A stretch of 64,000 nucleotides of DNA from positions 10,664,001 through 10,728,000 of the forward strand of contig OU015567.1 in the NCBI GenBank assembly GCA_907165135.1. Reading direction: 5' to 3'. How positions within the stretch are numbered: position 1 is the stretch's first letter; each line of letters begins with the position of its first letter. A program made the position numbers and the translations under genes. Origin of the DNA: Oikopleura dioica (Eukaryota; Animalia; Chordata). The notes under the pieces were generated by a model that saw only the letters and a list, made by a program, of their open reading frames with translations, was not told the DNA's origin and ran no database searches. This document shows positions 8,351-19,678 of the stretch, piece after piece.

Positions 8351-9024
8351 GTGGACATTCCATAAAATCTACTCACTCTTCTGTACCCTTCTTATCTCTC
8401 CAAAATGCATTGAAAAAATATTACTAGTTAGTAATTTACAGATTGGTCAACAACAAACTCCAACAACAATCTCAGCTACGCCGGGTGCGATCTATTTCCC
8501 AGGAGGGATGATTGCATCCTTCGTTTTCCTAAAATTAGCGCCATCTAGAGTAGTGCAGACTTTTTCTCGCTTTTTCCCGTCATTGATTATATTATTTATG
8601 TACTGTACTCACTCTTGCGTAAGAGAATATACGGCTGCTGATAATTTTCGATGCGATTATATAAAAATCTGAGAGTATCCTCTGAAAGTTAAATAAAATT
8701 ACAGTCTTTAGTAAGGACTCCTTATATTAAAGTTAGTTGCTGATCAGCTGAGACAAAATTTCACCGTACGTAACATGTAAGTACTCAGCATTTCTACCGT
8801 CAATTATATCCTCTGAAGAACTTACTTGGGATGAACAGTAAGCCTAACACTGGAAAATCTTTACATAAGACCTTCAGGAAGATTCCTTCCTTCTTCGGTC
8901 GGTAAATTATCTATTCATCTACTCCCAATGGCAACAGTGCCTGGTCAGACTTGTACGTGATCCCCATCTCTTATTAAGGATATACCCGATAAAATTGAAC
9001 TTTCATAGCGTCGAAATGGGGCAC

Positions 9025-9302
9025 CGGGGACTCCCAGTACCAATTGGTACTGCCAGTACCAATTTGGTACTCCCAGTACCAATCTTGGCAAGGCAAAATT
9101 TTAGTCAGCAAAAAACGCCCGCTCCGCGGGTTCTGTGATAAGAAACTTACTGATTCGGACTGGATACACTTCTATTTACCCGCCTACTATTGTTCCGACT
9201 GAAATATTTCTTAAAAATATCACTCGAAAAGCCGAAATTGGTACTCCCAGTGCCAAAATTGGTACTGGCAGTACCAAAAAGCTTTGGTACTGCGAGTCCC
9301 CG
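9025..9302. repeat. Internal inverted repeat built from CAGTACCAA/TTGGTACTG motifs
   Basis: Left arm CGGGGACTCCCAGTACCAATTGGTACTGCCAGTACCAATTTGGTACT mirrors right arm TTGGTACTGGCAGTACCAAAAAGCTTTGGTACTGCGAGTCCCCG, with about 170 bp between them. Confidence 0.75.
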
Positions 9303-9680
9303 ACCCCCTCGAAATGCGACGTAGGATCATTTTTATTTCAAAAGCAATTCTACGTAAGAATGCACGTAGAACTCAGATTTGGTACTTATTTATATTTTCT
9401 CATTTGAATTTTTCTCTTTAGAGCGATTTCAAATCATACTCTCTCGATTACTCAAAATTTTTGGACTAAATCGGTCGAGATTTTTCGATAGATAAGTTCT
9501 TTAGACCTTTATCTACAATTTTGATGGTTTACTTTTCGTTAATTCCGAAGGAAACCGATTCTAGAGCCATTTCATTGAGGGCTACTCAGCGCGTAAAAGC
9601 TCTACAAAGCGGCGCGCTGGGAGCTCGCTCACTCGAGTCCTCTTTTCCGAGAGAAAGTGCGTGGTTGAGCGCACGGCTCT

Positions 9681-9731
9681 GATTGGTAGCACGCGAAAAA
9701 ACCCGCAGAGAAGAAAAACAAGGGTATAAAA
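9681..9731 (+). promoter_or_regulatory. CCAAT (GATTGG) plus TATA box inside the TIR element
   Basis: GATTGG at 9681-9686 and TATAAAA at 9725-9731 at the end of a GC-rich patch (about 9590-9710). Confidence 0.3.
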
Positions 9732-10034
9732 GAAGAGAACACTAGAATGAAAATTCGATCGAGTTTAAGAATTTGATCCCATAAATTTTGTAGCTTAGCA
9801 TCATTACAATACAGAATACGGTTCAGTTTTAGCGATTTAGTGGAAAAATTTCGAGAAATCGAGAGAGTTCGTTTTCAAATCGCTATAGAGAGGAAAATTC
9901 TTATGAAAATTTCTAAAAAAGTACCAGAATTTAATTTAACGCACAATTTTAAGTAGGATTGCTTTTGAAATAAAAATGATCCGACTTCGTATTTAGGCGC
10001 TATGAAAGTTCAATTTTATCGGGTATATCCTTAA

Positions 10035-14515: not shown

Positions 14516-15506
14516 AATTTCATTTATCTCTGCTTGTAGTGTCTGTACTTTCGATTTAACGACTCTGAAAATGTTAGAATGGAGATAATTGCATTCTGCC
14601 AAAACAATCAAATCGATTTAAGCAACGACCATTGAATGGCTATGACAGTTTGAGCAGGAACAAGAGAAATCTTTCTTTGGTGAACCGGTTTTTCGTTTTC
14701 TCACCAAGATAGAGAGAGAGAATAAAAAAACGCACAGCGGGCAATAAAAATATAAGATGGGGGTAAAACGGGATCGTAGAGATGTTTTTTGAGATTTTTA
14801 ATTTTTTCTGCGAATTGGTAAGTATTCGGAACGGTCGGTGCGGCTCGCCTCGGGTCAAAAGATGCGCTGCCTCAGGCGTGAGCTGAGCGGATGTAGTTGT
14901 TTATGTGTGTGCTGTTTGAATTAGGTATTGGATGTAATGCAAGGAAAGAGAAAGAAAATTTGAACTTTTCAGGTACCAGAGGATGGCTAGAGTAGTGGCA
15001 GCGCACAGGCCTTGAGGCAACGCTACTGCGAAGCTGGGCACACCGACCGGCCGCTTCAGATTGTGGCAGTAAAGAGTGAATAGTGAGCATGTGGCGGCGG
15101 CCGATTGAAGAAAAGTTGTGTTAATCATTTTTAACAGCCGCTCACTCTACGCAACTACGCAAAATCATATCACGAGTTCTTGAGTTATACAGACTAGGAA
15201 AGGTGCACATTTAGTAGAAAAGCGTTTTTAAAACCTGTTTTTGTCTGAACAACTAAAATGAAAACCGGCGATACTTGAGCTAGCTCGAAGGCTAGCCCGA
15301 GTTATTGATTATTTTTTATGAAAATTTAAGATTTCAGAAAACCCGTTTCAGGCTGATACAAGGACAGTGAGTCATACAAAGTAGATGTTGCCGTTGATTT
15401 TTCTCTCGAATTGGATGCCCCCACAATCGGGTTAAGTTTAGGAGGCGATTGTGGGGGCATGGGTGTATGTTTTTTGGGGAAACAAAAAATACTCGCACAA
15501 ATATAC

Positions 15507-18500
15507 TCAGTTGATCGGCAAGTCGCGATCTTCCAAATAACGGTACTCGAATGTGAAGCCGTCTTTCCTTCTCTGTGCCCAGCGCTCGTAGTCGAAGTAA
15601 ATATACGTACCCTGAACAAACATTTTAAAGAAATCGTTGCTCTAGAAAAGTGGCTATCTATAAGCATGGCCGAATTCGTTTAAGCTAACTCTGACGCCTG
15701 TTCTCTTTACCTGTTCAAATTCTTCATTAATCTGCTTTGGCTCTTCATGTCGCTGAAACCACATCATATACTTTGTATGGAATCGCCAAGATTGCTTCTT
15801 TAGCGTGACGGCGGCCAGGTACTGGGCGCGCGTGCCTTCCATATAGTAGAAAATGTAGAATAGCGTCTCGACGGAGAGCTTGAGGAAGAACTCAGGAGTG
15901 TGCATGTCATCGATGCACCTGCTAGGGTAGAACTTGGGCGTTTCGACGGGATAGCGGGGCAGATACTGTCGTGGCTTTTCCGAGTCCGATAGTTGTGGCA
16001 TATGGCGATATGCAGCTTCTACCTGTGCGCGTTGGTTGTCAAACTCCCTCTGCGCCTAAACAAATTTTAATACTAACTTTTTTGATCCTAAACCGACCTC
16101 AGGAGAAACCTGCACCGGACTAATGAGATCAACAAGCGTACACTCTTTGAATAGCATCTCAGAGCTTGACCTTGAAACGTTGTTTTCCGAAGGAATCTGA
16201 ATCCAAAACACAGTAAATACAAAGATAAAAAACGATACTGTCTTGAATCAAGACTCTTGTATTTGAAATCAAGAAAGAGAACACTCACGTTATCGCTGGA
16301 ATTCAAGGACGCGTTATTGTGAACTTCTCCGTTTTGTCCATTACTATGTTGAGAATCTAAAAGTAACCGAAAATAAGTACGAAATCAAGGGGTTTTCCAT
16401 GCCTTGGGTGTATTGATGGTTCGCAATAGGCTCTCTTTTAGGCATCACAGGAGTGAAAACAGCTTCCGCAGGCGGACTTGTTCGCTCAGCTTCGTCGTTG
16501 TTAATATCAAGCTAGAGATTGTTTAGGAATAATCTTCACCGAAAATGATATGTTGAAAATTATCGTCGCTCTACTGAGCTAATCCGAAAATATCTTGATT
16601 GCTCTGCTCGCAAGGTGCTTTCAAGCCAATAAAGAGATTATTTGAAAATGGTGCAAACACCAGAGGAAATTCTTGAGTCATCTTTTCGACTAAACGTTAA
16701 CGAGAAAAACTATAAAACAAAAGTCTTTCCCGAAGAAGAAGATGTCATGTGCATGCACTTTGACATAGGCATCAGCATCAAGTACATCCGAAACTGGTTT
16801 CGCGCTCGGAAGAAAGAATTCATAAAAGAAGTTGAGAAGGCTAAAGCAAGAGAGGCACGTTTAGAAAAATTCCGAGCCCCGATTGAGGCTGCTTCTCTCA
16901 AAGAATTGAAAATATCACTGCGACCTATACCAGAGCATATCATAAGAGGCCATCAACAGGGAAAGAAAAGAATTCATGCATCTTCCGATGAGCTTGCGAT
17001 ACTGAAGGCTGCGTTTAAGGGACCCGGGCGAGTGACGCGGAGCTGAAGTTCACGCGCTCGCCGTTACTCTCAAACATGATATTTTTTGAAATTTTTTTTT
17101 GCAAACAATATCTTCAAGTATTCATCTTTCATTTGCGACTCTTAGTTTTTCTCTATCATTACTTGCTGATGAGCTAGAGTGAATTAAAGAATCGCAACTT
17201 CAAAAGGATTCAACTCCTGCAAACTTCATTCGATTTTCCTGAAACGGGTACCATTGAAAAGCCCATTAAATTCTGAACAGATACCACGTAATGCGCTAGC
17301 TAAAACTGTACCGATTGCCATTCGCGCGCTGATATACAAAAGAACTTAGCGCTCTAAGCACGGCAGGACGCTCCGATCGGGCTATTTTGGGGTCCCGGGA
17401 CATGATTCCCGCTGAGCGCGCGCTAAGTTATCTTGTTTATCTAACCTTTATCGCCAATTGGTACAGTTTCAGCCTAGCGCATTACGTGGAATCTGTTCAG
17501 AATTTAATGGGCTTTTCAATGGTACCGGTTTTAGGAAAATAAAATGAAGATTGCAGGAGTTGAATCCTTTTGAAGTTGCGCTTCTTTAATTCACTCTAGC
17601 TCATCAGCCAGTAATGATAGAGAAAAATTAAGAGTCGGAGATGAAAGATGAAGACTTGAAGATATTCTTTGCAAAAAGAAATATCAAAAAATGTTATGTT
17701 TGAGAGTAACGGCGAGCGCGTGAACTTCAGCTCCGCGTCACTCGCTCGGGTCCCTTAAGATCAATCCACACCCAACAAATGCTGATATCGAACAAATGAT
17801 GGTAGAGAATTTGCCGGGCCGGACTTTTCGATACATTAGAAAATGGTTTTACTCCGAGCGATGCAAGAATAAGAAGAGCGAAGTCATAGTAATAGAATAG
17901 ATAAAAAAAATAACTGAAGAATATTATCCTGAATTTGCATGCTACCTTTATTATAAGAGAATAAATTGACAATTGAAAAAAATATGTCACTAAACTTACT
18001 TGGTTCATATCTCTCGCTAATGAGTTCTGGTTCGAAGTCGCCGACTGATTGCTAGGCCATGCTGAGGTATTGCTTGGACTTTCTGACAGTCGTTCGCTGA
18101 CGTTGCTTTTTCGTAAAAGATTTGCCATGTTCGTAACTTGATTCGGATGAGCGGGCTGTTTCGGCGTTTGTGCAGGAGTGCCAGGGAAGGCGGCTGAATT
18201 GACGCTGCTTTTTGATGGCTTCCGCGGCGATAACGATTCTTCTTTCAGTGATTCACTCGCCGACGGCGGTCGATCAGGCGCTCCCGAGGATTTATGCCTC
18301 GTCCTGAATTGTTCGTTATGAAATACGAAGAGCTTTACTACCTGTCCGACTTTTCAGAGTTTTCAGAAAGTTTTCTATCGCGTTTGGACATTGGACTACT
18401 AGGCGACTCCTCCTCCTTTTCATCGGATTTCGTCGAAGAGTTCTCATGCACGTTATTCGTCGTGTACTCATCATTTTTCGCCATTTCTGGCACGAACTCC

Positions 18501-19678
18501 TCGTCAAACTCGAAATCGTCAAAGATCACCGCATCATCGAGATATAAGTTTTCATCTAAAAGGATATCCGTATTACTGCTCTTGTTTTGACGCCACTCGA
18601 GATCGTACCGTCTTCGTAGTTTTCCACATAGTATTCGACGTCTTCTCGGATATTGTTTATTTCGGCGGCATCGATTTTGTCGTTGTATAACAACCTCATC
18701 AAAGTTTCGATATTTTTCGTGTAGAGCATATGTCGGTCCAGTTTGCATTGAAGGTCGGCGCGTTGATCTTGACACAAGAGTTAAACTCACAGGAAATGAA
18801 CCAGCAAAACTAACCTTGGTCGGACTTTGAGAGTCGTTTTTTGTTCTCAAGACACTCGATTTCAGCCTCGTTTTGCTCAATGTGCCTGCTGAGCGCGTCG
18901 AGACTATCCTGCATCCATTTGTTGCATTCATCTTTCTCTTTTTGCGCAGGGTCCTTTGTCACTGGTCCGACTAGGCCTTCGCGACTGAAATCGAAAACAT
19001 TAGTTTTACCCACAGATAAAAGCTTTCCAAAGGAAAAATGGAAAGGTAAATTTACACTGTACCTGTAGGGCTTTGTCTTCGTTTCCCTTTCGACAACTTT
19101 GAATCTCTCCATTTGTCTTTCGATTATATGGCGATATTCTATCAGTTGCGCCTCATCGTTCGTCGCTTTGCTTGCTTGCCAGGCCTGAAACACACATGTT
19201 ATACTTCGACAGAAAAATAATTTCGCGAGGCAAGTGTAACTTTCACGCGCCCTGTCTACCAGACGGCATTTATGCTTTCACAGAAAAACAACATGCCTCA
19301 GTTGCCAAACATCATCAGTTGGCTACCAGCCTCAGACATAGGCCAAATTTAAATAACGTTTTCTCTTTGAAATTATAAAAAAGAATTTTTGATAAGACAA
19401 GAGATTATCAGTTCAAACCAGATTTCGAAGAAGAGAATACGTTGTTTTTCTGCTTGAAAATAGCGTATAAAATGTAAGTGTAAAAGTACCTTGATCTGGT
19501 CGCGCAGCCTCTGGAGCTTTTTGATGCATTTTTTCAGCTCTTCCTCCTTCTTCTCCTTTTGATTCGAGTTGGAGGAGGATTGGAGTTTATCCCAGACTTC
19601 GTTAAACTCCCTCACGCCTTCGTCGACTTTTTTATAACAATTTTCTATGTCTTTTTTCAACTTCCGAGCCGTTGCCAT
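15507..19678 (-). CDS. CNOT3: CCR4-NOT subunit CNOT3
   Basis: N-terminal Not3 domain [32 protein letters not shown]...[12 protein letters not shown]-terminal NOT box [48 protein letters not shown]...[12 protein letters not shown] 1488-nt intron at 16512-17999. Confidence 0.95.
16648..17900 (+). CDS. Divergent double-homeodomain protein, nested antisense in the CNOT3 intron and interrupted by a transposon
   Basis: HD1: [41 protein letters not shown]2: [19 protein letters not shown], then after the element [38 protein letters not shown] (17760-17900, stop 17898-17900). Removing the element gives one continuous frame. Confidence 0.75.
17019..17754. mobile_element. Foldback MITE with TTAA TSD and GGG..CCC termini (Kolobok-like)
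   Basis: TTAA at 17015-17018 and 17755-17758. Arms of about 330 bp starting GGGACCCGGGCGAGTGACGCGGAGCTGAAGTTCACGCGCTCGCCGTTACTCTCAAACAT are near-perfect reverse complements around a short spacer. Non-coding. Confidence 0.92.

Follow-up and report, generated by a model that had tools for sequence, protein, structure and literature searches.

Can a transposon that lands in the middle of a protein-coding sequence behave as an intron from the start, or does it simply break the gene? The question is raised by a 64,000-nt stretch of the Oikopleura dioica genome (GenBank assembly GCA_907165135.1, contig OU015567.1, forward-strand positions 10,664,001 to 10,728,000; hereafter the window, with positions counted from its first letter), in which a foldback miniature inverted-repeat transposable element (MITE) splits a small homeobox open reading frame (ORF) nested within an intron of CNOT3. 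The gain of introns through inserted transposons has good support in algae, dinoflagellates and Fritillaria, where it has almost always been inferred from fixed introns. Here both alleles exist, the filled one in the assembly and the empty one in wild metagenomes and a conspecific DNA run, with single-nucleotide polymorphisms (SNPs) that tag each haplotype. Our analysis favours, with a probability of about 60%, a young segregating insertion allele that is probably disruptive or hypomorphic, and not an established intron.

We first describe the element itself. The first-pass annotation, made from the letters alone, had reported a 736-bp foldback element inserted at TTAA, with arms of about 330 bp that would fold, and both points were confirmed. 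The element is non-coding, spans 17019-17754 and is bounded by two copies of TTAA (17015-17018 and 17755-17758); since contigs with the empty site carry a single TTAA here, the two copies represent a target-site duplication (TSD). It starts with GGGACCC and ends with GGGTCCC, and its arms (about 17019-17352 and about 17420-17754) enclose a central loop of about 70 nt. A repeat search aligned 285 nt of the inverted arms at 94% complementarity, and two further paired segments bring the total to about 330 nt. The terminal 45 nt match in inverse orientation with one mismatch, and a search of the window with the outer 45 nt returned two exact occurrences in opposite orientation, where shuffled sequences lead one to expect none. 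When 16990-17790 was folded as RNA, one nearly perfect hairpin was obtained at -544.5 kcal/mol, compared with -204 kcal/mol for shuffles (z = -39.8), and its stem begins at the two TTAA copies. Among ORFs contained entirely within the element, the longest encodes 51 amino acids (aa). With terminal inverted repeats (TIRs), a TSD confirmed by the empty site, and a small size without coding capacity, the element belongs to the MITE class. It is the product of a real transposition, far beyond chance.

A BLAST search of the window found no second copy of the MITE. Contigs of the conspecific DNA run (X25, same species label) nevertheless indicate that the family is probably multi-copy, because their summed depth rises to 317 at the centre of the MITE versus 16-20 in the flanks (roughly 15-20-fold) and because their loose ends run into unrelated flanking sequences. 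Scanning JGI metagenomes with the terminal repeat yielded one chance 22-mer in a bacterial contig of 71% GC and no copy of the MITE. As to its affiliation, the TTAA-specific DNA transposon superfamilies include piggyBac, Kolobok and some Sola, with which the MITE shares the 4-bp TTAA duplication and the seamless empty site. Canonical piggyBac elements have CCC...GGG termini, unlike the GGG...CCC arrangement seen here. The MITE therefore does not match canonical piggyBac, as the TTAA target fits and the GGGACCC...GGGTCCC termini do not.

The comparison with other isolates that the first-pass annotation had proposed did recover the empty site, in three marine metagenome contigs and in one contig of X25. 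Two of the metagenome contigs (L001 and L002, one of them a Tara METAG scaffold) encode an uninterrupted 170-aa protein, P0001, and a third Tara contig of 4.2 kb (L006) carries P0060, a longer call of the same homeobox gene. All three align to 16260-17019 and then straight to 17755 onward at 95-98% identity, and the two alignments overlap by the 5 nt TTAAG, which means a single TTAA and no MITE. In X25, a 375-nt contig joins 17014 to 17755 at a depth of 12.1, against 16-20 for the flanking single-copy contigs, and short contigs identical to parts of the MITE have a depth of 5-6; judging from these depths, both alleles are possibly present in the sample. Neither the protein collection nor an exact look-up of its two specific ORFs held an independent record of the filled allele. 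Given the exact empty site in three metagenome contigs and in the X25 contig, the insertion is polymorphic for presence and absence and does not represent a fixed or established intron; the MITE is absent from relatives and from every independent conspecific contig recovered. An assembly artefact was also considered as the origin of the insertion, and is ruled out by the clean target duplication together with the matching empty sites.

The filled and empty haplotypes can be told apart well beyond the insertion. About 20 flanking positions distinguish the empty ones, which agree with each other across samples, from the filled one, and A at 17768 and G at 16959 are tag SNPs of the filled haplotype. 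Within the ORF, four non-synonymous and four synonymous changes separate the two, plus a silent change in the stop codon. At two of the four replacements the window is the odd one out: N152K, which adjoins the invariant WF of the third helix, differs from both P0001 and P0002 (the nearest orthologue, described below), and residue 12 is a polar S in the window and Y or I in these two proteins. These two residues hint, weakly, that constraint on the filled haplotype is relaxed.

The same haplotype comparison bears on a further possibility, that the gene is rescued at the DNA level, with the MITE excising precisely, the empty alleles being revertants and the insertion acting as a reversible switch. 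TTAA-specific elements can indeed excise precisely, piggyBac-type excision leaves a seamless single TTAA, and the empty site observed here is of exactly this kind. We consider this scenario very improbable. Owing to the approximately 20 flanking differences and the match among samples, the empty allele is a separate, widespread haplotype and not a set of fresh revertants. The orthologues also lack the MITE, and no transposase partner for it turned up, a search aimed at transposases not having been made.

We then examined what the MITE interrupts. As first described, the homeobox gene is nested in a host intron: it lies wholly inside, and antisense to, a CNOT3 intron on the minus strand at 16512-17999 (1488 nt), whose boundaries were read from sequence. 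The element splits a 170-codon plus-strand ORF after codon 124, at the end of helix 1 of homeodomain 2. The 5' part (16648-17019, 124 codons) comprises a divergent homeodomain-like domain 1, a linker and helix 1 of homeodomain 2. The 3' part (17760-17900; 46 codons at 17760-17897 and a stop at 17898-17900) is intact and supplies helices 2 and 3. A search with the first 124 codons retrieved a sole protein cluster, P0001, whose 170 aa equal exactly 124 + 46; the window's 5' part is 98% identical to its residues 1-124, and the 3' part aligns to residues 125-170. About 60 nt past the homeobox stop, still within the CNOT3 intron, there is an AATAAA (17960-17965), a possible polyadenylation signal for the nested gene.

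The gene had been called a double homeobox, a description that is partly supported. Neither window ORF piece alone gave a Pfam match, and the natural intact allele was scored instead: P0001 passes the threshold of the Pfam Homeodomain family (PF00046) with 33.7 bits against a cut-off of 22.9 over residues 106-163, which establishes homeodomain 2, and its orthologue P0002 falls just under it at 21.1 bits. P0001 further matches the solved homeodomains of ISL1, PITX2, Engrailed and ATBF1/ZFHX3. For domain 1 the resemblance is weak. It resembles domain 2 (BLASTP E 6e-5), it appears as a second Pfam stretch in P0001 and at residues 22-57 of P0002, and PDB profile matches have E values of 0.07-0.5. 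The helix-3 motif of homeodomain 2 keeps an invariant W and F, with S, R or C at position 51 (WFYSER, WFYRER, WFYCER), and that of domain 1 reads WFRARK. The canonical WFxNRR with Asn51 was thus found in neither domain of the protein or its orthologues. A single-sequence AlphaFold model of P0001 reached a pLDDT of 42, too poor for use. Taken as a sequence, the product is a divergent homeodomain protein. Like ZFHX3/ATBF1, ZHX and ISL1-type proteins, it has a domain 2 that fits the Pfam Homeodomain family, and its best distant matches are multi-homeodomain proteins; unlike them, it is lineage-restricted, nested in CNOT3, non-Asn at position 51 and only 170 aa long, with no zinc fingers or LIM domains.

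Outside the window, the homeobox protein is also matched in 26 stretches by P0003, a 2559-aa 'ELK domain-containing' hypothetical protein of Candidatus Phytoplasma luffae (best match to residues 78-141, E 6e-28). P0003 is apparently a bacterial protein made up of repeated homeobox/ELK-like units.

Whether the insertion matters depends on whether this ORF is a gene at all. If it were not functional, the MITE would be a neutral insertion into a CNOT3 intron, and several features are in line with such a view: the two window pieces have no Pfam match, domain 1 is only weakly homeodomain-like, position 51 holds S, R or C throughout the family instead of the N of canonical WFQNRR, and protein searches found no transcript-derived protein of the gene. 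Comparison among relatives points the other way. A full-library search returned 59 relatives of the homeobox protein, the nearest being P0002 (175 aa, 46% identity) and P0005 (153 aa). P0002 sits on L004, a contig collinear with the window, where nucleotide identity is 81% over 15312-16513 and 80% over 17994-18555; a NOT2_3_5_C gene fragment lies antisense beside P0002. P0005 stands at the start of L007, an NCBI assembly contig, and the gene order after it agrees with that of the window: Not3 exons, then a Tudor gene, then a GCP gene. Intronless orthologues therefore occupy the same CNOT3 intron in two divergent lineages, and an ORF of 153-175 codons has been retained there across three lineages in which the flanking intron DNA is no longer alignable. 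Values of dN/dS are about 0.2-0.3 (0.36/1.25 for L004 against L007 and 0.51/2.3 for L001 against L007), and the motifs LxxAF, PGR and WFYxER are invariant in the family; the homeobox gene evolves far faster than the surrounding CNOT3 exons. Because the ORF is conserved in the same CNOT3 intron, dN/dS is about 0.2-0.3 and the intact protein passes the Pfam threshold, the homeobox gene is, on comparative grounds, real, constrained and under purifying selection, and we regard a non-functional ORF as improbable. Apart from the insertion, the analysis thereby describes a putative two-homeodomain gene, conserved and unannotated, that lies antisense within CNOT3.

The locus is common to at least three divergent lineages: the window and the Tara contigs at about 98%, the lineage of the RNA runs considered below at 90-95% in exons, and L004/L007 at about 80%. 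Cryptic-species structure has been described for O. dioica (10.1101/2023.05.09.539028), and the divergence of lineages at this locus fits it. The matches in marine and Tara metagenomes, introns of 42-99 nt and a GC-AG intron likewise agree with an Oikopleura origin.

Given a constrained gene with a transposon in its second homeodomain, we next considered how the transcript could be read. The junctions, donors, acceptor and in-element stop set out in the first-pass annotation were all found as claimed. Written with a slash at the splice boundary, the candidate GG donor is AAG/GGACCC (17020-17021, plus strand), the candidate GT donor is CGA/GTGACG (17032-17033, plus strand, in phase), and the candidate AG acceptor is CCCTTAAG/ATC (17758-17759, plus strand), made of the last A of the TTAA and the G that follows it. 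Both donors preserve the frame with the acceptor ending at 17759. Removal of 17020-17759 (740 nt) would restore the ancestral coding sequence, giving ...AAFK/INPHP..., identical to the natural empty-site allele as had been predicted, and use of the GT at 17032 would add the four residues GPGR (a 12-nt remnant). If left unspliced, the frame runs through GPGRVTRS to a TGA at 17044-17046, and the 132-aa product lacks helices 2 and 3 of homeodomain 2.

This arrangement suggests that the MITE could be a nascent transposon-derived intron, removed by the spliceosome either exactly (GG-AG) or with a 12-nt in-frame remnant (GT 17032). The homeobox gene would then stay functional, the insertion would be nearly neutral, and pairing of the arms would bring the splice sites together. 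Besides the frame being kept by both site pairs, purifying selection on the homeobox gene would make a null allele costly. Splicing in O. dioica is also permissive. About 10-12% of its introns are non-canonical, GA-AG being common (PMC8008620, PMC7072748), and genome annotation in this species has admitted GGAG as a hinted site (10.1101/2023.05.09.539028). An illustration lies directly next to the host intron: the next CNOT3 intron (16357-16402, minus strand) is a GC-AG intron, with ends CT..GC on the plus strand, and its joint is present in all three RNA runs (X7-X9, sister lineage).

The splice-ready geometry, unlike the transposon itself, is not beyond chance. It comes cheaply, because the element starts with G and exact removal of an AG-ending segment needs merely a G after the TTAA, a coincidence of about 1 in 5; the sole GT before the stop likewise had a 1-in-3 chance of being in phase. 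Moreover, AAG/GGACCC, CGA/GTGACG and CCCTTAAG/ are all weaker than the sites of the six neighbouring CNOT3 introns, whose donors are five GT and one GC (four AG/GT, one AC/GT, one AG/GC) and whose acceptors are T-rich YAG (CAG or TAG). The candidate acceptor has a short pyrimidine tract with A at -3, and neither candidate donor closely resembles the local donors. The hairpin stem encloses all three sites, and some -544 kcal/mol of folding would sequester them. An intron of 740 nt would also be unusual in a genome with an intron size peak at 47 nt and 2.4% of introns above 1 kb (PMC5240408). Finally, the orthologues are intronless, and the empty allele is the prevailing form in each independent DNA sample. 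Taken together, these points leave splicing of the MITE a possible but doubtful outcome.

The RNA runs themselves are blind at this place. X7-X9 are three raw oligo-dT runs from a divergent lineage, with reads 90-95% identical in CNOT3 exons, and they show CNOT3 exons and small introns as joints. Over 16508-18235 their depth is 0, including the CNOT3 exon that immediately precedes the host intron (from 18000) and belongs to the same mRNA. Because a 92% likeness filter hides orthologous reads, the zero depth says nothing about expression or splicing of the homeobox gene.

We therefore return to the interpretation of a young, segregating and probably disruptive or hypomorphic insertion allele. 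It starts from direct observations, namely the element, its target duplication, the empty allele elsewhere, the conservation of the gene and the geometry of the splice sites, and from these we infer the consequence for the mRNA. A non-autonomous, TTAA-specific foldback MITE would have inserted recently into a small, fast-evolving and constrained coding sequence with two putative homeodomains. By default, a homeobox transcript would enter the MITE and stop eight codons later. Domain 1 and helix 1 of homeodomain 2 would still be present in the truncated protein, whereas helices 2 and 3, the recognition helix among them, would be missing. The result would be a loss-of-function or hypomorphic allele, tolerated perhaps because it is young, possibly because it is heterozygous, or because the homeobox gene is non-essential. 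For CNOT3 the insertion is intronic and would be harmless.

Certain observations weigh against such a disruptive allele. The 3' part of the ORF shows no damage at all, but with so young an insertion its intactness is not informative. Around the GG donor there are an exonic AG and an A at +3, as reported for non-canonical donors in Oikopleura (PMC7072748), and GG-AG is an accepted splice type in O. dioica annotation (10.1101/2023.05.09.539028).

How does the locus compare with known cases of transposon-derived introns? PMC3443670, which cites Denoeud 2010, names Oikopleura as one of the species in which indirect evidence points to introns gained from inserted transposons, and this lends some weight to the splicing of the MITE. 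The closest case is another larvacean, Fritillaria borealis, whose MITE-derived, non-canonical introns with TIRs and TSDs point in the same direction. As summarised in PMC11282704 (from Henriet et al. 2019), these introns are numerous, fixed and short, mostly have AG-AC or AG-AT boundaries, and their splicing is proven by RNA. On that account they share with the MITE the larvacean host, a short non-autonomous element with TIRs and TSDs within coding sequence, a splice boundary derived partly from target-site sequence, and a permissive spliceosome. In contrast, the O. dioica insertion is one 736-bp polymorphic copy with a proposed GG-AG or GT-AG boundary.

Introners, found in Micromonas, Aureococcus and many eukaryotes, have good splice signals, hundreds of gene-enriched intronic copies and efficient splicing (Huff et al. 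2016; Gozashti et al. 2022, PMC9860276). They resemble the MITE in being DNA transposons with TIRs and TSDs, and in them the element provides one splice site and the duplicated target the other, as would be the case for the MITE. For the MITE family, good signals, many intronic copies and efficient splicing are conjectural. Further examples are Tc1 in Caenorhabditis elegans and Ds/dSpm in maize, exon insertions that are removed, precisely or imprecisely, by cryptic splicing, usually with small in-frame scars and with gene function partly kept. These too are exon-inserted elements with TIRs and possible cryptic sites in or near the terminal repeats, and their removal was demonstrated experimentally, whereas here it is a possibility.

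It follows that the route from transposon to intron is already known from introners and Fritillaria, and the new aspect, if the MITE is spliced, would be a polymorphic stage in an animal. The more specific proposition, that a G-initial, TTAA-targeting foldback MITE landing at TTAAG is an exactly removable intron beginning with G and ending in AG, and that this locus is such a nascent intron with both alleles segregating, we consider unlikely and put forward tentatively. If true, the locus would be a natural, genotypable system for watching the birth of an intron in an animal; if the MITE is not spliced, it is an ordinary segregating loss-of-function insertion.

The window contains a second, unrelated foldback flanked by TTAA, at 8978-10030 within 8974-10034 (about 1053 bp), with the terminal inverted repeat GGATATACCCGATAAAATTG and inner arms at 9312-9473 and 9833-9994. 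Its removal leaves joined flanks with an uninterrupted plus-strand frame of about 95 codons, to which no meaning was assigned. This foldback was considered as another case of exact removal and rejected, as the base after its duplication is C and an AG ending is impossible.

The structure of the host gene was read as follows. The bounds of the host intron, read from the sequence, are close to those of the gap in similarity with L004, which ends at 16513 and restarts at 17994 of the window; without the MITE and one TTAA the intron would measure 748 nt, and the corresponding stretch of L004 measures 746 nt. The CNOT3 exon downstream of it (16403-16511, minus strand) is defined by the RNA joint from 16356 to 16403 together with the listing of splice sites. 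NOT2_3_5_C and Not3 Pfam matches fall on adjacent minus-strand genes in L004, L006 and L007. Further along, a CNOT3 intron holds a small palindrome, GTCTTGAATCAAGAC, at 16240-16275, beside several contig breaks: the three metagenome contigs terminate at window position 16260, and one X25 contig ends at 16262 with the next starting at 16275. These breaks may reflect an assembly-breaking hairpin or a variable site.

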